Shown: in pieces, positions 29,561 to 48,400 of the stretch
Numbering within the stretch: the stretch's first letter is position 1
Layout: each line of letters starts with the position of its first letter
The notes under the pieces: generated by a model
Database searches by the model: none
What the model was told of the DNA's origin: nothing
The model's input: the letters and a program-made list of their open reading frames with translations, nothing else
Position numbers and translations under genes: made by a program
From: Magallana gigas
Taxonomy: Eukaryota
Length of the DNA stretch: 64,000 nucleotides
NCBI RefSeq assembly: GCF_963853765.1
Contig: NC_088855.1
Location: 39,246,001-39,310,000 of the forward strand
Direction of reading: 5' to 3'

Positions 29561-30480
29561 ATCAGCGAAATGTATTTGAAATTGTTTGGCCTTGCATTGA
29601 TTAGGTCATCCATATGACCAAGTGAGCTTAAGTCGCTAACAACCATCCATCGTCATGTAATCACCTATTACTGTAGACTTCTTAAAAAATTTCTTTGTTA
29701 TAGAGTGATCTTCATGCTATGTATGATGCTTTGTCCTTGCAAAGTGTTGTTACTACTGTTATCATGCTCCTATGGTGTTTCTACAGTTTTCATAAGTAGC
29801 GTTGGTAACTCTGTACTAATCGGTAATACACTGAGGTGGTTTATGGACTTCTTTATTCTTATTCAACTCGATGTTGTGGTGTTATGTTTATCATTGATCT
29901 ACCCAGTTCAAACTACATATTTTCTCATATACAAGTATTAGACATTTCACATGAATTCAATATATATTGTACGCATTTTATACATGAATGTTAAATGTTC
30001 TGGGTTTATTTATATAACAATCGACTACTTTATTATCATGGGCTGTCAAAACATCATTTTCCATGTATCTTATCAAAAATGACAATGGATATGTTCCAGT
30101 GTTTCATTTTACCCAGTTTTCAACAAGTACTATCCAATGTACATAATAAAGTTGGAATTTCAATTCGCGTTTAGCGGGATGTTTCTTTTTCATGAGCACT
30201 TTGTCAAATGTTTCACATACTTTGATATAAATACGAATTACCTCTTATTTATATGGACAACATTAGAAAAACATTCATTTGAATTTACGTCTTTTTAATT
30301 ATATTTTAAACTTTGAATAACAAATAAAAACAATTGCACATCGTTTTCTATCACAAATCTCGTCAATATACATCAATTTTCTTTAAAAATATAAAAAACA
30401 AAACATTTTTTTTATTGACAACTGGGAAGTTTCTTTTGTTGTTGTTGAAAGACTAGTCCTCTTCTGTACATGAGTTACTT

Positions 30481-32118
30481 TTATGGTGACTCTTCTTCTT
30501 TTTTGAAGAACTGCAAGCGTTTACCTTTACTTTTCAGTTCATCGTAAATGTATTTCATATCAGAACACAAAACAAACTTGGATTCTTCTGTTTCACCCTG
30601 CTCAGTGTATCTTCCATTCAAGATAGCCACTACCTCTATACTCTCCTGACTTGCACTAAAGCTATTCTGAAATACGAGTGATCCACTATCCCCAGGGACA
30701 CTGAAAGGTTGTTCAAGGTCTTCCACTAGAAAAGCACTATGGGTTTCTCGATCACCCAGAACTTCTCTGTAGGTCATCATTTCTACTACAGTTCCTTGTG
30801 TTATGCCTGTTGAAGCTCCCTTTTTATGGACAATGGCGGGAATAATCAGGTTTGGCTTTCCTAAGTATATCGTAGCACTCTTGGGTTGGTCCTCATCATC
30901 AACAAGGGGTTTTCTACACTGTTCTGTCAGTCCATTATTGACCTGAATGAGGGCAAAATCTGCTAAAGACTTCGAACCAGGAACTAGAACAAACTGGCAC
31001 TTTCCTAACTTTATCAAACTGTCACCGTCTTTCACGTATGCTTCGATTCCTTTGTCAACCACATGGAAATTCGTTAGTCCTACCACGTCCTTGCGGTTTA
31101 CTTGTGCAAAACCCCCAAGAGTTCCGTACTTGCCTGGATTTTTTTTATCAGGCACTACAGGACTACCTGTTCCAAAGTGTTTGGTATAATGGACACCATT
31201 AGAGTTTACAAATTTGACTTTCCAGGAAAAGTTTTCGTTTTGTATGGTTTTTTGAATCTTGCCTTCAAGAGACTTCCTTTTTTTCGATGACAGACGGTCA
31301 TTCACCAAGACGTAAAATTCATCAGGTCGAAATCCATAACCGTAGATATGGTCAGCATTCCTGCAAATTAAAAACGTTAAAATTATATTCAACTACAATT
31401 TTTATATTTTGAGATCATAAGATAATATCGATTTCATCATGTTCCTTAGTCCGCTAAGTACGTCTTTAAAGATAAAAACCCATACTTGTCTAGTTCTTTA
31501 AGTACTTCATTGGGGACGGTCATGGACGGGGAAGCAGTCACCGGTTCTTGTGGTAGCTTTGAAGACATCCGAAGTCTCTTTAGAAGGGCATCGGACTCTG
31601 TCTTTAGGGACCTAATCCTTTTGGCAGACGACATACTCTCTATACATAAGTTTGACTGTAACAGAGTGATATATTCGTTCATCGGGACTTCGAACGCTGA
31701 CGTTAAAAGCTCCAGTAAGTCTTCCCTCTCACCATTGGAAATAACGATTTGAACATTACTTTTAGGCACATCAGTATCCTGAAAATTCTCATCCAACAAA
31801 GTAAAGGGTATTCCACAATTCAAAACAACCATCACACATGAACCCATTCCAGTCAACTCAGAATTGGCTATATCCACAGACAGCTGAAATTTAATTATGT
31901 AAAGTATTAGTTTGGGATGTTCTTGAGAATGTCGTAATCAGACGGACTCGGGAAAGGTCGGTACATACCTTTTTAATCAAAGAAATGTTTTCCTGTTTTG
32001 ATTTTCCTTCAAAGCAACGGTATACGATACACGATAAAGACCAGCCTTCGAAGTCGGAGAATTTCAACTTAGGATGTGATTTATGTACATCTAAAAATAA
32101 GAGGTAGATCAAAATCAT

Positions 32119-32164
<46 letters not shown>

Positions 32165-34463
32165 TGAAATCGATTAAGAGAAAATATTGGGACATTTTGT
32201 AATGTAATACCTTTAGTTTTTAATGTTTCTTTTTGTCTATCAACAGAAAGAAATGGCAAGTTTTCCCAATGACCCCTTGTTTCTCCAGCCAGGTAAATGA
32301 TGGGGTTCTTTTTCACCTTATCCCAGTGAACAAAGTTCACGCTATTCAGCCCAGGCTCTTCAGCTTGTAGAGTAACAAATCTGTCTCCAAGACCCCTTAG
32401 CAGCTTGCCGTGATATCGGAGTCTTGGAAAATCCTCGAGTTGACACTTCAGAGCTTCAAAAGTCGTAAAATGTGACAATGGATTATCTGAAAGAGAAATA
32501 ATCAATTATATTATGAGATTTCATCAGTTGGGAATTACTTATCTATAGTAGTGATGCATTACTGCGATCTCAATTCCCAAATACGCAATAAAATACTAGA
32601 AAAATCAAAATTGGATTTAAATTGTGATACAACATACCCATCTCTTCATATATACTGGGCGATTCTGGAATATTTGTTGCTTCTGACGAATCTTGCATTA
32701 GATGCCTTTTTAACAACCTTTGCATCATCTCTAATGAACTACAACCGACTGCAGTCTCAACAATATGTTTTCTACCCTTCATTCTCTGCAAAAGTTTTTC
32801 CACTACTAAGAAGCTATTTGACCAGCAAGAAAACCAGAAGAAATCAGAGTTTAAAAGCATATCTAATTGTTCTTTACAGCCCGATAGATTTTCCAAAAAC
32901 ATTTGAAGAGTACGGTCATTTTTCAGTAAATTGAACAGTTTTAGGTTTACTATGGTGTTCAATTCCAAACTCAACCTCCCGCAAAGCCTTTCAATGTTAA
33001 CATGATCAGTGTTATCAAAATGTTTTGAAAGCTTGTCTAAAAATATCAAATCGCAATAATCTATGAAAGCCTCAGGATAGTGTTTCAGTGAACAGTTGCA
33101 TGCTTCATTGAGTACGATAGTACTGGATATAGAGTAAGAATTTTCATCCTTTTCCAACAACGACTTTGATAAGGTTTCCAATGACATTTTGAATTTTTTT
33201 TCATTGGTGTCGTATCCAATCTTTTTAGCTACTTCGTACAGTTTTGAAGATTTCCAGTTATCCTCTGTTAACTTGTTGCCAAATATCAGAGTCATTATAA
33301 TGGCGAAGGACAGGTCCTTTCTTCTTTTGAACATATCCTGAAAAAAGGTCTGTAACGATGTTTCAGAAACATCAGAAGTCACGTCCAGGAAAGTTTGTTG
33401 TTTTAACCTACTCCAAATATCACAGGCTTGAAACAGCTCATAGTTACTTGTATTTGCACCAAATGGATAATCAAATCCTGCTATTACGTTTTCTCGATCT
33501 TCCTCTGTAAGTTTGATGGACGATAAACGAATAACAAATTTCTCTAGAAATTGCAACCCTGTCCGATCTCTACATCGAGAATATATATCTTCCCTTGAGG
33601 TCAGAATAAAGAAAACTCTTTTACTCGACTCTTCGAATTTTTTCGTCCTTGAATACCACGCTATGGTCATTGACACGTCTTCATCATACCGACCGAATAT
33701 ATCATCGAATAGAATTGTCGTTCCATGACCCACAGTTCGGAGTTCTTCTGGGTGCCGAATTTCGAAACAATTAGCCGAAATTCGCCCTTTTCGATCTTTC
33801 AAAAGTCTTTGAGCAATAGCGGTTTTACCAGATCCAGCATCTCCTGTGATCAAAATAAGGCGACGTTCTTCAAACACCGACTTGCATTTGAGGTACTGTG
33901 CAGTTTTTATGAAGGTCTGTTTTCGTAGAGTGTAACCACCTTTATCAGCCACTGGAAATGTAAAAATATTAAAATTAAATCATTCATTGATACTTATTTT
34001 TTCATATATTGATTGAGGGTGATGGTATATGTCATTTTGGTAGCGCTTATATTTGTCATGTAATGCAATCAATCGAAGTCATCTAATTTAAAGATCATAC
34101 TAGTTTTTATTTTAAAACCGCCATTTTAGACATATTTCTGGTAAAAGAAAAACATGTGTTTGCGGTCGGTTTATTGACACTCGCTTCAATCTGTTTATTG
34201 TTGTTTTTAAGTATTTATAAGTACTATAAAACTTACTGTTGAGTGTTACTGTGCTGTTTTGTCCTTCATAACTGGCTTCCTTTAAAGACAAAATTATATA
34301 TCTCAACGAAATCACATACAAGTTTATGTTTAATTTGTAAAAACTGACATGTCAACTCTGCAATAAGTACCATATAAGAAAAACAGGGATACCAATCTAT
34401 TTTTTTTTACCTTTAAACAAGCCTTAGTTGCAGAATACACACTATTTGGATACTTTATGAAAC
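30481..34463 (-). CDS. STAND-class NTPase (nSTAND3-like) - ankyrin-like repeats - unassigned domain - trypsin-fold (Nal1-like) serine protease fusion, ~1000 aa; 5' end uncertain
   Basis: Phase-consistent exons 34463-34411, 34279-34237, 33951-32638, 32486-32211, 32090-31969, 31883-31486, 31360-30481 (3086 nt, no internal stop). Walker A GDAGSGKT, Walker B TILFDDIFG, FILTSR; ankyrin-like SCWSNSFLVVEKLL / AVGCSSLEMMQRLL; protease GTLGGF, LTNFHVV (His), ADFALIQV (Asp), KKGASTGITQGTV, PGDSGSLVF (Ser). A Met (A|TG, context AACATGG) forms at the 34237/33951 junction. Confidence 0.85.
32123..32154 (+). repeat. (GA)16 microsatellite
   Basis: Direct reading; intronic in the STAND-protease gene. Confidence 0.95.
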
Positions 34464-34877
34464 CTTGACAAGATCATAAAAATAAATTTTAGGTCATGTT
34501 TTATTAAAGGTAAATCCACGCAATAAACCTTTATTATTCAAACTACTCTGGCATTTAAATTTCTTTAAGCATCAACGGTGCATAGATTTTTAAAAAATTT
34601 TGTAAACGGCCCAGTGGGTATCAAATTCATGTCCGTCTTGTGACAATGACTTGAGCTATAAACACTCAGATACAAGTACCATTGATTAGTTTCAGTTTAC
34701 GAAACTCGATTAGATAACTAAAAGAAAAAAAAATAAGGAAATATTTCAACATGTACTGAACTGTACGAATACAATGTTTGAAGCTACAGAATTGATATAA
34801 TTAAAATTCAGCAAAAGATTATTGTTTTACAAAAATACTCAGTCAAAGCCCATACTTTAACCTACTATATAGATACC

Positions 34878-36323
34878 TCGGTTCTGTAATAAGTTTAACA
34901 ATCTTTCGCTAAGTCTCCACCTTTCGTACAACACTAACACAGCTAGTAATATTCATCAGCTGGTAATATTCCTGAAGCAAATGTATATAGATCTAAATAT
35001 ATGTACCCTTTTAAAAGTTACCTTGGCTATTCACTGGTTCTCAATGCATGAACGCGTAAATCTTATTTCTTGTTGTTTGTTTTACTAGACGTTTTACTAC
35101 CTGGTCTAGAGGACATTTAAATGCCTAACAACACACGATATTATTACGTACAAAATGATATCAATATACTTGCTTTTTCCATCAATCTAGATGGACTGAT
35201 ATTGACATGATGGTATAGTTTATAGACGGTCGACAACATTGCAGAGCGGTACCCATTTTGTCACTGGATAATGTAGTTGCTATTGGTCTTGTTTAACATG
35301 GCTGACTTTGTATTCATTGTTATGATGTCATTGATATTGTTTGATATGAGTGGAAATTGAATAATCATTAGACTGACGCAGTCATATTCACTAAATTTTG
35401 GAATGAGACAATATTCAAAATTCTAAGACTTTTGAAAACGTTTTGCAAAACGCTTCGTTTAATACCGTCGTTGTTTTTTTTCTTTTTATCTTGTTCCCCT
35501 TCAGGGGTAAAAAGCTGTCAATGACGTATTCAAGCATTAACCAGTAACTCTTCTTTGGTGTAAATAACCCTTAATCTATGCATTTTCAGCATGTATTACG
35601 TAATAAAAACGATTTGCTCTACAACAGTACAATGATTTGGTTATACTGTGAATATTTACATCATCCTTCAAGCTTGATTTAAGTACCTAGGCCTTGATCA
35701 ACGTGCTGTATTTGATATCGAAACAGCACTCTAGTAAATCAATATAAGAATGCATTAATTGTGCAGGACACCCAGATATTCAAATTTGAAAGGTTAAACA
35801 ATTGAAGTATGTATTCTACTCAGATGACGTTTTACAGTATTACAGTATTTTATTTTTTTTCAGGTATGATTTATACATAATGCACTAAATAAATACTATT
35901 GAAATATTTTCCGTACCAAATTTCATGACCGTTTTTTTTTTTTTTTTTTTTTTTTACATCATTACATCATTTTTCTATTTTCATTTTGGATCGATAACTA
36001 TTCATCAACAAACCAAGCAAATGTATTAAAAATGGCCTAATTAGAAATACTTAATCATTATAATTATTACGACGATATTCGAACCATTAGTGTTGGTGTT
36101 ATAAATCATATAAGTGAAGATTTAAGTTTAACTTACAAATGTAGCCAAATCAGCTATGATATTAGGTTCTAAAAAGATTTAATCTGAAAGTAACACGTAC
36201 CTACCTTAGCCAAAACTCTTATCTAGCCCCCCAAACCGCTAGGAATATTCCATAAAGATTAACTAATATAGGTACGACCGTTTTCAATCATTAGAACAGA
36301 ACACCTAACTTGTGATCGATGTC
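34878..36323 (-). pseudogene. Three decayed exons that read as a Death-domain-like N-terminus of the STAND-protease gene
   Basis: Exon-like units 36323-36205, 35124-35022 and 34972-34878 with good AG/GT sites. Joined they give IS*SLWNIPSGLGG*IRVLAK|AFKCPLDQVVKRLVKQTTRNKIYAFMH*EPVNSQ|GILPAD(frameshift)ILLAVLVLYERWRLSERLL, then splice in phase to 34463. The Death-domain resemblance is by eye. Confidence 0.5.
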
Positions 36324-37898
36324 CTGTGAAGTATTTTGCGAAAATCAATAAATGTTTATATCTAGCTACCGACGCATTTTACTTCCTTTATGGGTGTAAT
36401 GATTCACTGCATTTACTTAGTTGCCTAAAAATTAGCTGACGAGATTTTAAAATAATTTAGTCGAACCTCTCATTTTCACTATCAGTGAGTTATGCAGTGA
36501 ACAGTGGACTTACGTTTATATCACAAAATGTGGCTGTTATCGGCAATGTAGATTTAACTTTATATATCATGTAAGCTGCTTTGCAAAACTAAAATTGAAA
36601 TGTCGAAATGACATAGCACACTATAAACTCAAACTGACATTGAAAGGGTGGATTGGCATTGACAAGTCATAGCACAACTGTCTACGTTGTATAAACAAAA
36701 GAAACAGAACTGCTTTATATATTGTGTTAGTAACCTGCTGTTGTTGTCCTTTACTTATTTGTAAATGTCATCCTCAGTAAGGTTTCCATGACAAGGTGTA
36801 TTGTGGTCCTAATAAATCCTATGATTACAATTAGAAAATACTACAGTTCATGTAACATCTCTTCACGAGTCTTAACAAAATGAGATAAAACAAAGGAATT
36901 CTTTTTATAAAAGCTGTCATTTGTACACAACATTTTTAAAATGTTAAAAAACCAAATACCAGTTGCAAGCGTCATTAATGTATATTGGGAAATAAAGCTA
37001 TCGATATACTGCCGAAAGACACAGTTGTATAGATACCAAGCTAGAGAACAGTTAAATCTGAACCTTGCCGTTATCATGCAGTTTCAAATCATAAACACCA
37101 AGTTATACATGTACCAGTACATTGTTAGTGGTATACATGTATCTTGACTAAGATTTAAGTGTCATTGATGGCCCAATATCTCACGGTTTCCTGTTCTCTC
37201 TCGTGATTTTTTAAAAAAGGATACAAGATTAAAGATCTAAGTTTGAATAACAACATCAACAACAACAACAACAACAAAATTCTCATTCTATTCTCTTAAA
37301 TTATTTTTCCAAGAAAGGACTGCATTGAAACACTTTTAATTTTTGTATACCGTTTAATATTATGTACAAGTCCAATTACGGTGTATTCTTTCCTTCTACT
37401 AAAATAATGGATACCTTATTAAAAACCTGAGCAAATTATGACAAAGTCTTAATTCTATTTCAAAGGTTAGAGTTTTATGTTAGGGGAATATCGATTGGGT
37501 AACCTATCGAAAACCTTGAAAGTCCTGCGTTAGACAAACTTTTTAAAAGATATAAAATAATCCTAAAAACTACTTGTATTCTTATCTAAATAATAATGCT
37601 ATACATGTAGGATAATTAAGTCGTGTATGAGAAACAAACTCATAAGAAAAGATTATTTTATTTCTACCCCCAGCATCCCTGTAAATAATAACACAAATGA
37701 ACCCATCAGGAAGTTTTAATCAATTTGTATTGTATCCAAATCACCAACATCAGTCCAATATTATCTTTTTGAAATTTAGTTTCTGAATAAAATTTGAATT
37801 GATGGGAAGACTTATCTGAAAGTAAATTGCATTAATGAAATAGATTTTATTTGAGAGATAGCTTTATTTTTAGCTTTATTTTAAAATGACCCTGACCA

Positions 37899-42370: not shown

Positions 42371-44684
42371 ATGGCGGCGTCCACGATAGAAGCGTTAGTT
42401 TGCGATTTATTACCAGTTTTTGGAGTCGATGCGTTAAAGGACGAACAAAAAACAATACTACAGTGTCTGATGAATAAAACGGACTGCATGGCAGTTCTTC
42501 CCACGGGCTATGGAAAGTCCCTGCCTTATCAGATGTACAGTTTGGTAAACCGACGACTGACGAGTGATAAAGAAATCGTTCTCGTGTGCTGTCCACTTGT
42601 GGCCTTAATGCAAGATCAAGTAGAAAAAATGTCAAAGATTCCAGGTGTGAAATCAGCCTACGCAGGTATTTACCTTTCTATTTTTTTTTTCAGCAATAAT
42701 GTTGCAAAAATCACTTGCTACATGTATGGGTAATAATACCGTTGATATAAAACAATGATACTTGGATTGTAAACATATAAAAGAAAAGCTGTTAAGGTTA
42801 AGTTTTGATATGATTACAAATAATTCAGAAATTGTGAGATAACTGAATGTAGAATTTTAGGCAATTTAGTGTCATCTCCTATAAGTTTGCCAAAGAGGCC
42901 CCTATATCAACATTTGATAGAAAATTTCTGTTTCCATGCAATCTTATCTTTAAACAAAAAGATTAATTATATGGCCAAGTTTAAATATTCTTCTCACTCT
43001 TTGAAAGCATGACTAATATTATAACAAGGTAATTTTTCACTCGGACTATTTGTTTACAAGTCAGTTTGTTTACGAGTTGACTGTAATTCGTAATATTTAC
43101 TCATTTGTACTTATCAAATTCCATGGCATTTTCTTTTCCCGTTAGGTTCATGTCCACAGAGTGACATTGAAATAAAGGAAGGCAAAGTGGACATCATATA
43201 TGCATCGCCAGAAACCTTGGTAGGTGATCCAGAATGGAGGGCAAGCATCCAAAATTTGCCAGTGTCTGTGCTTGTCATAGACGAATTCCACACAATTGCT
43301 ACATGGTATGTTTAATTAAAAATACAGGTATTATTTATCAAGTTCCATACTGAACTATGTTCTCTGAAGATACTGAATAACTGATGACAAAAACAAAAAA
43401 AATATAATTTTTTTTGTCACTCATTTGTCTGGAACATGTCATTGTCAAAAACTATATGGATTCAGGAATAATGCATGTGCAAACACCAAAATTATCAGTG
43501 ATAAAAATGTTCACATCTCAAAAGCTGAGCTACAGATTTTATACCAGTGTTTATATATATAATTGTTCATATTAAATTTCTTCAGTTAGTCCAAATCAAT
43601 TAAGAAAAAAATTATCTACTTAATGGAAATGTCCCTCCATATAAATTAGCATTGGCACCATTAATTACTGGTATTTGATTAATCTTCATACTGCACAATA
43701 TATTGATAAATATACCTGGTTTCAAAGTTTTGTTGAAATCTTTTTTACAGGGGGGACGATAGTGAAAGTCAAGGCAAGGAAACATTTCGTAAATGGTTTA
43801 ATGATGTTGGAGAATTACGCTCCCTTTACCCAAGATCATCAGTGTTGGCACTCAGTGCAACGTGCACTATAAAGATTAGAAAGAGGGTGATGAAGGTACT
43901 GCATTTAGCTGACAATTTCAAAGAGATAGTTATTTCTCCAAATAAAACAAATATTAGAATATCAGTAGCCAAAGTATCAAACACTGTAGAAACAGCAATG
44001 CATTGGCTTATCGAGGGGCTGAGTGAACTCAAAGAAAAATTTCCAAGAACGATTATATATTGCACCTCGATAAAGGATGTCTCTGAAATTTATTCATATG
44101 TTACAAAGGAATTACCTTTCACTTCAACTTTACTGGAAATGTTTCATTCTGAAACCCCACAGACCAAAAAACAAAGAATCCTGGAAAGTCTAACAAACAT
44201 TACAGGGGAAATCAAAATTGTTATTGCCACTAGCGCATTGGGCATGGGATTGGATGTGAAAAATTGTCACAGTGTCGTATTATTTGGACCACCTGTGCAA
44301 ATTGTTGACCTGCTTCAAGAAATCGGACGAGTCGGCAGGGATGGAGGACCTTCAGTTGCTATTATTTTATATAACTGTTATCATCTTAGAAAACTCTCAT
44401 CAGATGTGAAAGAAATTTTGAAATCAACTGACTGTAGGAGAATTTCATTGATGCAGTGTTTTTTAAAGCCAGAAGCTATTGCATTGCTTAAAGAGAATGA
44501 AAGCAGGAAACACACATGTTGTGATTTATGTAAAACTAAATGCAAGTGTCAGAACTGTAGTATGCTTCCACTGGAAGAAATCTATTACCATTCATCGGTA
44601 AGCGTCAATCAGAAAGACAGTGATATTTCTGACAGTGATACAGAGGAGTACTTCTCCAATGATGAAAATTTAGAATTGTCTTGA
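42371..44684 (+). CDS. RecQ-like SF2 DExH helicase carried by the transposon, 462 aa
   Basis: Exons 42371-42665, 43146-43305, 43751-44684 (1389 nt, open). Motifs LPTGYGKS (I), CPLVALMQDQ (Ia), VIDEFH (II), LSAT (III), IIYC (IV), ATSALGMGLD (V), QEIGRVGRDG (VI), CRR...CCDLC Zn-binding region; no HRDC or long N-terminus. Confidence 0.93.
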
Positions 44685-45096
44685 TCAAATAAAAATTGAA
44701 CTTTTTACTGCTTTTATTTATATGCGAGAAAAATTACTTAAATTGATTTTTGCTAAAATATCAAACTTTTTAAACAGTAATTAGGCTGTCCAAAGTCAAT
44801 TCTATATTTATTGTCACCTTCGAAATACATTACCTACTGTACAAGGAAGATTAAAGTTGGACTTATAATAAGTTATTTTTCAAAATGGCAATTTCTTCAT
44901 GTTTGTTGGTGATGTTCAACAAAAAATTATCTTTGGACAGCCTTAGTGAGGGTGAATTAAAGGCAAGAATCTTGAAAAACATCCACAGAAAAATTTTCAC
45001 TGTGACATTATTTACTTTAGATGACTGTTCAATATTAACATGACATGGATGATAATTCCTGTACTACAATAATACAATGTACAATCATTATGTTAA

Positions 45097-45438
45097 GGTA
45101 CTTCACTACACCAAGACTTGTACTTTTCAAGACGCTACGTCACAAGATGGCGATTTAAATGTTTCGTTAAACTGTTTGTATCAATTGACTCAGATGTATA
45201 TCGTAATAGCTCAGTGGTTAAAGTATCAGGCTTGTGAACCGCAGGTCATGAACTCGAATCCGACTGGGGCTTTTGTTTATGTTTACTGAATGAAATTTTT
45301 GAAAATGTCATTTTTTATCTAAAATTGCACATTTTTTCGCCTATTTGACACATATACTTCTTATCCATCATGCTATCTATCATAATCAAGTAATTTTCTG
45401 GTGAATTAAGAAACTACTTCAAGGTGTAGTGAGGTACC
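45097..45438. mobile_element. 342-bp Kolobok-like MITE nested between the helicase and transposase 3' ends, carrying a tRNA-derived core
   Basis: ttaa|GGTACTTCACTACACC ... GGTGTAGTGAGGTACC|ttaa; internal TAGCTCAGTGG (A box) and GAACTCGAATCC (B-box-like) followed by TTTT at ~45205-45275. Confidence 0.8.
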
Positions 45439-45443
45439 TTAAG

Positions 45444-48400
45444 CTAAATATGATGACTTCGGAGTCGTCGGTATGGTAAGCTTGGCTTGTGGCGATGAAT
45501 CATTTCTGGAAGTCCAGAGTAACAGTTTTCAAAAGGGTTTTTGTCATTAACAAGGCATCTGCATTGTAATTGACGTTTTGGAATGTTACACAGTACATTA
45601 TGTTTCACCAAATCTAAGGCAACTTTTTTAACATCATCATGGTAATTTGGTAAGTGATGAAATCCTTTCCTTGGGTTCATATCGCTGATTGACTCCAAAT
45701 GTTGCACAAATCCAACTAAATGCGGATATTCCTTTGAATGCTCTATAATACTTTTTTTAGTCTGATGTCCTGAACAGGCTATTTTGCTTTCCCGGTTTAA
45801 TATCTCGAGGTATTCATCCAAAGCTATGTTATTGTTTCGCCCTCCTTGTACATTGACAAATCGATTAGCAACCAAACGCTCACATTGCTCCTCTTCAAGT
45901 ACTCCAGATGTCAAAGCTGATAAATGAATAGAACCAATCACATACTTGACTTTTCTTGTTCTGTTATAAATAGGTAGTTCATACTTAGTAGAACGTACTG
46001 AACGCTCACCGTCTCCCATATCTACAGCAGTGTCAAGGTTTTTGTGCAGCAAGGTTAACTTAAACAGCAGAGAAATGTAGTCTTGTAATTCATCCGAGTC
46101 ATTTTTTTTCTTTGGCTTTTTATCCTTCATAACAACGAAATTATGAACTTTAGATTCATGCGACTTTAATGAACCTATAAAAGCATAATCCTTTTCACAA
46201 AAGTGACACTTAATCCGACCACCTTCACAAATGTTTTCAGTCCAGTAATTTTCAGGGTGATTGGGATCTGATAGTACTTCTCTAAGGGATTGACAAATAT
46301 CTGTGCCATTGTCAAAAAACCACTTCTGTACAATTTCTTCACAAATGTCATTCAACCAATGCAATTTCTGCTCCTCTGTAAAATTCTGAAAATGTTCTGG
46401 TACAGGAATATCGCTTTCAAAATCCTTTAACCCAAAATGATTATAGAAAAGTGCCATGATTATACCATCCAAAACAGTATAGTATAACATTTTGTGTGGT
46501 CGATATGAATTCTTTACTTTTCCTTTGACATTTCTCATGTTAAGGACATTTCTATAATAATAAACAGTTCCAGGATCACTTGCACTTTCTGTACTGAATG
46601 TCATCTTGTGTATTGCCTAAAATTTAAATATATCAATTTAAATATTGAATGCTTGGTAATTAATTTTGGAAACAATGGTATAATAATATCAAAATTAAGA
46701 ATGATTTAGCTAACCATACACAAATATTTCTTAAAATTTTAATGTGAAAAAATTGCCTTCAACCATAGCAAAAATTGTACCTCTAAGAAATTCATGAGAC
46801 GGTGGAAATCCTCTGTCTTAGAAATAAACCCCTCTAGCCTCTCTTTCGCAGAACCTGCATTGCTCATTGCTTGTTGAGCTCCCTGCACTCGTTCGTCGGT
46901 GAGTCGGTCTCCTGAAAATGAATAAGATATTATGCAATATGCATACAACTTATAAATCAGTAGCCAACTGTGGACCATCTGAAAGAATTTTCACTATTCT
47001 GAGATTCATATATCAGTGTACCTGAGATCCATAAATAGATGGATTGCATTAATGTTAATTTCTCACAGGTAAGATATACATGATATTAAGTAGGATATAA
47101 GCTATAGATATACTCCCATAACAAGATCTGATATCAGTTTTTAGGCTTGAATACAGGGTTGGATGGGTTCTAAATTTCATTTCTTTGAAAACAAGCTTAT
47201 ATTCATAGTATTGAAGATGTGACATTGTGTAAATATTTCTACTTGTAGAGGTGTTAACTATTAAATTAAAAAAAAAATATAAAAGACAAACCTCCAAAAA
47301 ATACTGGCTCAACAATTTCATCATCTTTCATTGGCACATACATGTTTGTTAGCTTCTTCAGCAACTGGACAACATCAGCAGTTTTTGTTTCGTTACAGTC
47401 ATACAATCCAAGTGGATACTGCAAAATAAAATGCATACAATGTACATATAGTTATAAGAATGATATTGGATTATAAACATTAATGAGGTACTTACTTATC
47501 ATAAGCAATATTTATATAACAATCTATAATCTAAAATATGGCCAATTATTAGTTTAAGCTAATTTCCGAGACGTGATTATGCTCATAAGCTTTCGGTAGG
47601 TACATATTATGGGATGGGATGGTCATACAAACAATGCTGGCACATATTAATTTGCTCCTTCTTTTAACTACTTTATAATTCAATCTAAATCACCTGAGTG
47701 GTCTTCAAACCAGCAAAGCGACTGTATTTGTGCTCAAGATGATCAGGATATATTTTGTGGAACAAATTTCCAATCTGTGGTATGTTTTCAATGACAGAAC
47801 GTGCACATAGAAAGGTCATTTCCTTTAACAGAAGCTCCTGTTCTTGAGTTGATGGAATGAATTTCAGATTGTCAAGTTCTGGTCTATTCTCTGTCAGGGA
47901 GTTTGTTGAAGATGCTGGTACAACCCGATCCACAATGGCATACATATTAAAGAGATGAAGCGAGAGGGTTTTTCTATCTGAAGTTCTATAAGATGGTAGT
48001 ATATTCTTATCCCAGTTATCGCCTATGATCTGGAACTTCGTCTGATCACCTTCTGCCCATGAGTCTCTAATAGAAACCAAATCCATGTCTAAATTGTCTT
48101 GCCAGCTGATAAGTTTCTTGTGAACGGTTTGTGGGTGGACACTAAATCCAATTTTAGACAACCTCTCAATATCCTGTTATGAAGATTAAAAAGAAATATA
48201 GATTAAAATTTGCACAGCATGGCTCCTGCAAATTAAAAATGTTATGCTAGTTCAGCACAAACCTGATGCATACTTTGTATATCCTAGATATAAATTACCA
48301 ATTTTAAAATGATATGGTTGGCAGAAAACCACAATTACAACTGCAATTTAAAATAGACTTAGTAAATTATATACATGTACATGTATAACTTACCCGTTGC

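Follow-up and report, generated by a model that had tools for sequence, protein, structure and literature searches.

STAND NTPases act as nucleotide-gated oligomerization switches, as has been established for Apaf-1, NLRC4 and MalT, and apoptosomes and inflammasomes both depend on a STAND switch to govern proteolysis. To our knowledge, animal STAND proteins that do so always recruit the protease, a caspase, as a separate molecule. Effector peptidases have repeatedly been joined to STAND modules and to immune modules of the Death type. Among the architectures tabulated by Kaur, Iyer, Burroughs and Aravind (eLife 2021, PMC8195603) are transmembrane-TRADD-N-nSTAND3-ankyrin proteins of Crassostrea virginica and TRADD-N/Death-Trypsin fusions of amphioxus. 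On the protease side, the nearest structural relative of the enzyme described below is rice NAL1, whose catalytic triad is misaligned in the trimer and which is active only as a hexameric cage (PMC12012508). Here we describe an oyster gene that joins a STAND NTPase to a NAL1-like serine protease in a single chain. It lies in a stretch of 64,000 nucleotides from Magallana gigas (contig NC_088855.1, positions 39,246,001 to 39,310,000; hereafter the window, in whose coordinates all positions are given).

The gene is located on the minus strand and spans 30481-34279, with additional exons of the 5′ untranslated region (UTR) near 36.2 and 36.7 kb. Its product is a four-part protein of 996 residues that consists of a STAND NTPase with lid and winged helix, a helical extension, an alpha/beta domain and a NAL1-like protease. 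The protein is probably cytosolic, since no signal peptide was evident by eye. A preliminary description of positions 30481-34463 had read this region as one spliced frame encoding an nSTAND3-type NTPase, ankyrin-like sensor repeats and a trypsin-fold protease, and it had proposed an architecture unrecognized in characterized animal proteins. The gene structure and domain content given here, which differ from that account in the region between the two enzymes, are in our judgment practically certain.

Four long open frames are present on the minus strand (33952-32570, 32505-31891, 31877-31446 and 31392-30481), and splicing yields a single frame of 996 codons in which every intron is GT-AG and the frame is kept; the product starts MADKGG. 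The start codon is itself split by the intron between 34237 and 33951, with its A at 34237 and its TG at 33951-33950. The open reading frame (ORF) begins 13 residues ahead of the NTPase domain and encodes no N-terminal effector or adaptor domain. Upstream, the two main 5′ exons end at 36205 and 36735 and a third, minor alternative ends at 34411; all three variants carry in-frame stops and lack an ATG, and there is therefore no domain N-terminal to the NTPase. Of the stretch originally assigned to the gene, the spliced fusion frame was retained, whereas 34280-34463 was traced to the minor alternative 5′ exon (34411), which is open in frame and has no ATG.

Contigs and reads of four RNA runs were aligned to the locus for junction counts. 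All five coding junctions (34237/33951, 32638/32486, 32211/32090, 31969/31883 and 31486/31360) were found in RNA contigs from three runs of three studies. Stranded polyadenylated raw reads crossed four of the five as well, with nine reads at 31486/31360, four at 31969/31883, three at 32638/32486 and one at 34237/33951; junction 32211/32090 has contig support and zero such reads. First mates were all plus-strand, which for most types of stranded library points to RNA from the minus strand. A 2446-nt contig from 30519 to 33445 crosses four junctions and extends from the protease exon into the main part of the NTPase exon; it ends 3′ of the Walker and LTSR motifs (33593-33844), and other contigs cover these motifs up to 33951. 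Other runs yielded independent transcript contigs (3.1-3.4 kb) with complete ORFs of 995-1000 residues that are 74-93% identical to the window protein, and the RefSeq counterpart XP_011437805.1 (C. gigas LOC105335550, 1000 residues) is 90% identical. In RNA-type runs of eight studies, 0.71-0.77 of the 31-mers sampled in 30450-34350 were present, the exonic share being 0.785. Because RNA spans the junctions and full-length ORFs occur on transcripts, the NTPase and protease parts are not two separate genes; the RNA-seq check suggested in the preliminary description thus came out in favor of its single spliced frame.

Residues 14-156 match nSTAND3 (Pfam PF20720) with an expect value (E) of 7.9e-20 and 71.6 bits against a cut-off of 27.2, and the corresponding domain of the relative P0147, which is 93% identical to the window protein, scored 69.6 bits. 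Matches to the NACHT, NB-ARC and AAA families were confined to the P-loop and all fell below their cut-offs (NACHT, 18.1 bits vs 26.7). With the GDAGSGKT, hhhhDDIFG and LTSR motifs intact, the nSTAND3 assignment made at the outset is upheld. Orthologues of the Crassostrea type retain both Walker motifs and the arginine of LTSR, and the first Walker B acidic position is acidic in every sequence (Asp, or Glu in P0119). We presume the arginine to be comparable to that of the TTR motif of NB-ARC.

The region that follows was modeled with AlphaFold2 on P0147 from a ten-sequence alignment (residues 150-712, 563 residues; mean predicted local distance difference test (pLDDT) 72.9). C-terminal to the P-loop domain, at about residues 193-298 (model residues 44-149), the model predicts a helical lid and winged helix of the kind usual in STAND/AAA+ modules. 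VIA-align related the winged-helix region to Cdc6/Orc1 (Z 9.2), a plant TIR-NLR (Z 8.1), the STAND protein 6mfv with tetratricopeptide repeats (TPRs; Z 7.5) and the maltose-system regulator 8bob (Z 7.4), all of them moderate Z values. The nearest structural neighbors of the model in the ESM Atlas were nSTAND3 clusters (template modeling (TM) score 0.33-0.39).

It is in the next region that our analysis departs from the preliminary description, which had placed ankyrin-like sensor repeats between NTPase and protease. The region consists instead of the lid and winged helix, a helical extension and an alpha/beta domain, and the ankyrin assignment was rejected. The helical extension (about residues 299-438) is modeled as short helices with a spacing of 23-25 residues, a misfit to the 33-residue ankyrin period. 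Pfam Ank was not matched at E up to 1 in the four exon ORFs of the window or at E up to 10 in P0147 and its parts, and no ankyrin, leucine-rich repeat (LRR), TPR or WD40 family was found at E up to 1 in the exon ORFs or up to 10 in P0147. Ankyrin proteins were absent from the 50 best Foldseek or VIA-align rows; armadillo-like rows in Foldseek were weak (E 0.2-0.4). The alpha/beta domain (residues 446-685, pLDDT mostly 80-90) is family-specific, with no match in Pfam or among PDB sequences and no significant Foldseek match, and an ESM Atlas feature search with residues 440-710 gave no usable match. A profile of the helical and middle regions had 0 matches among PDB sequences, and a Foldseek search of the 563-residue model against the PDB returned nothing below E 1e-3, the best row being NAIP5 at 0.04. 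The only fold lead for the middle domain, the mitofusin G domain (Z 8.3, root-mean-square deviation 4.3), is within the noise range given for VIA-align.

The C-terminal domain is a serine protease of the chymotrypsin type. As a single sequence it scores just below Pfam cut-offs, with 23.2 bits vs 26.1 for Nal1_C and further matches to Peptidase_S64 and Trypsin_2. A family profile, in contrast to the single sequence, retrieved rice NAL1 from PDB sequences at E 2.7e-10 over both the His and Ser regions. The AlphaFold2 model of the domain (pLDDT 93.4, predicted TM score 0.82) has the two-beta-barrel chymotrypsin fold, and Foldseek placed NAL1 at the top (E 7.7e-12, probability 1.0), followed by active S1E enzymes, namely alpha-lytic and Streptomyces/SGPB proteases, with TM scores by target of about 0.75. 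When 1.84 billion representative proteins were searched exhaustively with HMMER, no more than 117 relatives reached E 1e-3 or better; the named matches looked up among these were all bivalve (Crassostrea, Saccostrea, Ostrea and Mercenaria), and the family is, among named matches, apparently bivalve-restricted. In an alignment of 75 relatives, the motifs GTLGGF, LT-xHV, VHK-GA-T-xT-G and GDSGS are at least 90% conserved, as is the triad, which corresponds to H99, D134 and S225 in protease-domain numbering. The TNRHV region of NAL1, to which the oyster histidine aligns, holds the His234 named in PMC12012508. The trypsin-fold protease with TNFHVV, ADFAL and GDSGS that had been read from the letters is borne out by conservation and fold, and so is the Nal1-like KxGxxTGxTxG motif, present as KKGASTGITQG in a domain whose profile and fold are nearest to NAL1. 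The predicted protease and NTPase are probably both catalytically competent, although we hold this with less assurance than the gene structure.

The gene is single copy in the 564-Mb genome, where identity to any other NTPase exon does not exceed 32%. With the NTPase half as query, a word-based search recovered four Crassostrea-type full-length proteins and no others. The orthologue in Saccostrea echinata, LOC133205754, is annotated at 689 residues and starts inside a longer open frame (L038:9074-10390, GCA_033153115.1). There, a whole NTPase exon is open, collinear and 43% identical directly upstream in frame, with the Walker A sequence GEVGSGKT, so that the RefSeq model looks N-terminally truncated. 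A Saccostrea paralogue, XP_061198020.1 (1012 residues, 24% identical), has a sub-threshold nSTAND3 match with Walker A, a homologous middle region and the protease. Since the Saccostrea orthologue and this paralogue share the layout, the fusion is old within oysters. Pairwise ratios of nonsynonymous to synonymous substitution rates (dN/dS) against four transcript sequences were 0.25-0.35 overall and 0.04-0.48 per domain, and every domain is therefore under purifying selection. The transcript ORFs (L039-L043) form several groups, 74-93% identical with dS 0.11-0.59, a divergence that points to deep alleles or sister Crassostrea species.

These data bear on the simplest objection, that the fusion is an artefact of neighboring genes read through or a decaying chimeric pseudogene. 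The RefSeq models of the Saccostrea and Ostrea orthologues, which lack the NTPase part, would fit such an artefact. All junctions are nonetheless spanned by contigs (and four of the five by raw reads), independent transcript contigs carry full-length ORFs, dN/dS is below 0.5 in all domains, and in Saccostrea the open NTPase exon runs without interruption into the annotated ORF. The artefact explanation is thus largely refuted, and we regard it as barely credible.

The protease module has a wider distribution in the genome than the fusion. At least 18 other protease exons were found, the best 28-35% identical, clustered on C1, C7 and C8 with one on C6; G000:C1:41.9-43.9 Mb and G000:C8:1.47-2.14 Mb hold at least 11 and 4 of them, respectively. 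Members of the C1 cluster belong to a family of 712-764 residues (e.g. C. gigas LOC117687101), and Pfam found nothing in the N-terminal half of these proteins. The C6 exon (G000:C6:40569674-40583800) lies downstream of RING and B-box exons and is the orthologue of Ostrea edulis LOC125649015, a TRIM-like protein that ends in the same NAL1-like protease module. When the NTPase and middle parts were compared by tblastn with the 10-kb upstream flanks of 18 paralogous protease exons, no match was obtained, and these 18 paralogues are therefore without this NTPase there. In a quick protease tree, the window protease groups with its orthologues (Shimodaira-Hasegawa-like approximate likelihood ratio test 99); its relation to the paralogue clade and the RING-B-box clade is unsupported.

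Table 1. Positions of the exons, motifs and predicted catalytic residues of the NTPase-protease gene in the window
Feature	Position	Strand	Basis and remarks
Coding exons	33951-32638, 32486-32211, 32090-31969, 31883-31486, 31360-30481	minus	Frame analysis and RNA junctions
Alternative 5′ UTR exon 1b	36735..36800, 3′ end 36735	minus	X1/X2 contig loose ends at 34281 match sequence ending at 36735; 5′ limit approximate
Alternative 5′ UTR exon 1a	36205..36300, 3′ end 36205, then donor GTAGGT	minus	Junction 34278/9 to 36204/5 in X12 contig and X22 raw reads; 5′ limit approximate
43-nt exon, 5′ UTR and A of the split start codon (A/TG)	34237..34279	minus	Junction 33951/34237: contigs from three runs, one raw read
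Large exon: nSTAND3 NTPase, helical lid and winged helix, helical extension; residues 1-438	32638..33951	minus	Pfam, VIA-align, ESM Atlas
Walker A, GDAGSGKT, residues 37-44	33821..33844	minus	GSGKT core invariant in all orthologues and the Saccostrea paralogue
Walker B, TILFDDIFG region, residues 78-84	33701..33721	minus	Sequence alignment
LTSR motif (in FFILTSR), residues 117-120, sensor-1-type arginine	33593..33604	minus	Conserved in orthologues, absent from paralogue P0051
Exon, start of middle alpha/beta domain, DFPRLRYH motif	32211..32486	minus	RNA junctions; conserved in Saccostrea, Ostrea and paralogue P0051
Exon, middle domain	31969..32090	minus	RNA junctions
Exon, remainder of middle alpha/beta domain and helical linker	31486..31883	minus	RNA junctions; AlphaFold2 pLDDT mostly 80-90
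Last coding exon, residues 705-996 and stop: beta-alpha-beta lead-in and NAL1-like chymotrypsin-fold serine protease	30481..31360	minus	Profile, AlphaFold2, Foldseek
Predicted catalytic His803 (TNFHVV)	31063..31065	minus	At least 90% conserved in 75 relatives; aligned to NAL1 TNRHV region
Predicted catalytic Asp838 (ADFAL)	30958..30960	minus	At least 90% conserved in 75 relatives
Predicted catalytic Ser929 (GDSGS)	30685..30687	minus	At least 90% conserved in 75 relatives; aligned to NAL1 GDSGS

A (CT)n microsatellite at 32115-32171 lies in the intron between exons 32486-32211 and 32090-31969 and was skipped as a repeat in read placement. Upstream of the gene, 34876-36229 is represented by a low-depth X2 contig, spliced to 34278, that differs from the window by 28 letters and 26 gaps, so that some individuals transcribe this upstream stretch; the open pieces of 34860-35570 on the minus strand (within 34860-36323) have no Pfam match. 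Elsewhere in the window, 20001-22000 stands out from the remainder by its pronounced strand asymmetry (GC skew +0.24, AT skew +0.19), and 42371-46604 has plus-strand open frames resembling helicases (43842-44684) as well as a minus-strand ORF of 386 residues (45444-46604).

It is hypothesized that the NTPase serves as a switch governed by its nucleotide state. The helical or alpha/beta region, or else a partner, would sense a trigger that drives nucleotide exchange and oligomerization of the N-terminal half, and oligomerization would bring the C-terminal proteases together and turn on cleavage of host or invader targets. Sensor, switch and effector would reside in one chain, with intracellular surveillance or regulated cell death as the most likely setting. 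The step from oligomerization to proteolysis has a precedent, because rice NAL1 is active only in the hexamer (PMC12012508). We consider a protease activated by oligomerization to be a proposition on which belief and doubt are equally weighted, and the same applies to the explanation as a whole; the immune or cell-death role within it is held slightly more tentatively. In its boldest form, the gene would be the first in animals to encode a STAND sensor that carries its own protease and so condenses an inflammasome or apoptosome into one chain, in which ligand-driven NTPase oligomers assemble an active NAL1-like cage for an immune or cell-death response without a caspase or Death-fold adaptor. 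We think this form rather unlikely, but if it were true, the bivalve protease module, which is also found on TRIM-like RING-B-box proteins, would constitute a new protease effector arm of molluscan innate immunity.

Several observations weigh against an oligomerization-activated sensor-protease. The geometry of the triad is inferred from the predicted fold and from conservation. The protease is C-terminal, the usual position of a STAND sensor, whereas the protease effectors of bacteria and fungi are N-terminal, and Pfam and fold searches found no recognizable ligand-sensing repeat (ankyrin, LRR, TPR or WD40). At the second acidic position of Walker B, the Saccostrea orthologue and paralogue both have Asn, and the sensor arginine is absent from P0051, which suggests that hydrolysis may be non-essential. 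The annotated model of the Ostrea edulis orthologue (LOC125679617) has no NTPase part, dN/dS averaged over domains shows no diversifying selection, and a main-text literature search for LOC105335550 and XP_011437805 returned no paper.

Alternatively, the protein could be a signal-regulated processing protease of ordinary cell signaling, in which the STAND module is a nucleotide-gated on-switch, as in STAND-type transcription regulators, and the enzyme clips a host regulator. The only relatives of known function by sequence or fold are NAL1 and Ssy5/S64; NAL1 processes the transcription factor FZP, and yeast Ssy5 (peptidase family S64) cleaves transcription regulators. The gene is also single copy and under purifying selection, with no expansion of copy number seen, and is steadily expressed in many RNA runs of several studies. 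Set against this are the company that bivalve nSTAND3 modules keep, having been described beside TRADD-N/Death architectures of the apoptosis and immunity type, and the nature of the protease family itself, which is bivalve-restricted among named matches and has been shuffled onto RING-B-box and other N-termini in a manner typical of conflict systems. We give the signaling explanation a real but minor share of the probability.

The C-terminal placement of the protease can be taken at face value, in which case the domain would be a sensor or bait for pathogen protease inhibitors or substrates, with output through oligomerization and a partner. STAND sensors sit at this position, no other sensor repeats appeared in the Pfam and fold searches, and no N-terminal effector or adaptor domain is encoded. 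Conservation of the triad and of GDSG throughout the family favors enzymatic use, however, and the same domain occurs on quite different N-terminal modules in relatives, as would be expected of a portable effector; a bait function is thus improbable in our view. The order of a P-loop NTPase followed by a C-terminal serine protease also resembles Lon, and NAL1 forms a proteolytic cage, so that an ATP-dependent degradation machine in which an NTPase ring feeds an attached protease chamber was considered. STAND proteins act as switches rather than unfoldases, and the NTPase here is a winged-helix member of the STAND class. Between it and the protease lie about 550 residues belonging to other domains, and the protease has a chymotrypsin-like fold and is not of the Ser-Lys type of Lon. 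A Lon-like machine is accordingly a very improbable explanation.

Whichever function applies, the locus offers a tractable test case. With a conserved, expressed oyster gene that has its NTPase and protease in cis, the question of whether oligomerization alone switches on a cis protease can be put with just two mutants (Walker A K43A and catalytic S929A). It introduces a small, apparently bivalve-restricted protease family tied to rice NAL1, whose activity depends on the hexamer, and the module, which recurs behind TRIM-like and other N-terminal parts in bivalves, is thereby a candidate portable effector in oysters, which are important in aquaculture and suffer mortality from ostreid herpesvirus 1 (OsHV-1) and Vibrio. 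If the sensor-protease proposal fails and the enzyme proves to be an ordinary signaling protease, the gene would still provide the first animal context for a NAL1-like enzyme.

The architecture is uncharacterized in animals, and no description of the protease fusion was found. The novelty claimed in the preliminary description nevertheless has to be narrowed: no characterized animal protein of this design was found, but the published nSTAND3 alignment (PMC8195603) already includes the NTPase of the C. gigas counterpart XP_011437805.1 as one of its rows, STAND-protease fusions have been catalogued in bacteria and fungi, and trypsin fusions of amphioxus are listed. An nSTAND3-Trypsin architecture is absent from the tables of that study, which cover only proteins with TRADD-N, GT4 or bDLD3. 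The coupling of proteases to STAND proteins in prokaryotic defence, to which the preliminary description had appealed, is indeed catalogued in bacterial NACHT/Avs-type systems and extends to fungal nucleotide-binding leucine-rich repeat (NLR) proteins. Two known identities were considered and rejected for the oyster protein. It is not a canonical animal NLR, in that NACHT is sub-threshold, LRRs are lacking and the ORF has no N-terminal Death-fold adaptor. Neither is it a bacterial Avs/AVAST protein; PADLOC returned matches only at the level of the P-loop (PDC-S73, mad8 and TRIP13), none for the protease and none of Avs type.

Compared with the described bivalve nSTAND3 proteins (PMC8195603), the oyster protein likewise has an NTPase above the PF20720 cut-off and a winged helix after it, but it is without TRADD-N, Death, transmembrane or ankyrin parts and ends in a protease. 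The amphioxus TRADD-N/Death-Trypsin proteins in the source data of the same study also combine invertebrate modules of the apoptosis and immunity type with a C-terminal trypsin-like domain; unlike the oyster protein, they have no STAND NTPase. Rice NAL1 (PDB 8PMG, 8HAS and 7Y77; PMC12012508) is the best match of the protease in both profile and fold, sharing GTLG...LTN-H-V, K-G-xxTG-T-G...GDSGS and a small lead-in before the two beta-barrels. Identity is only 18-21%, however, and NAL1 is a stand-alone plant protein that self-assembles to the hexamer, whereas in the oyster the protease forms the C-terminal part of a chain that begins with a STAND NTPase.

Bacterial Avs/bNACHT proteins with peptidase effectors and fungal NLRs with Peptidase_S8 resemble the oyster protein in coupling a STAND NTPase to a protease effector within one chain or system. 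Their effector is N-terminal and their sensor (TPR, WD40 and others) C-terminal, whereas the oyster protease, from an animal, is of the NAL1/S64-like kind and not a caspase, generic trypsin or S8 enzyme. The NLR inflammasomes and the Apaf-1 apoptosome of animals would share with the oyster gene a STAND switch that controls proteolysis through oligomerization. They recruit a separate caspase by way of CARD, PYD or Death-fold adaptors and pair NACHT or NB-ARC with LRR or WD40 sensors, whereas the oyster protein carries its serine protease in cis and has no Death-fold domain in its ORF.

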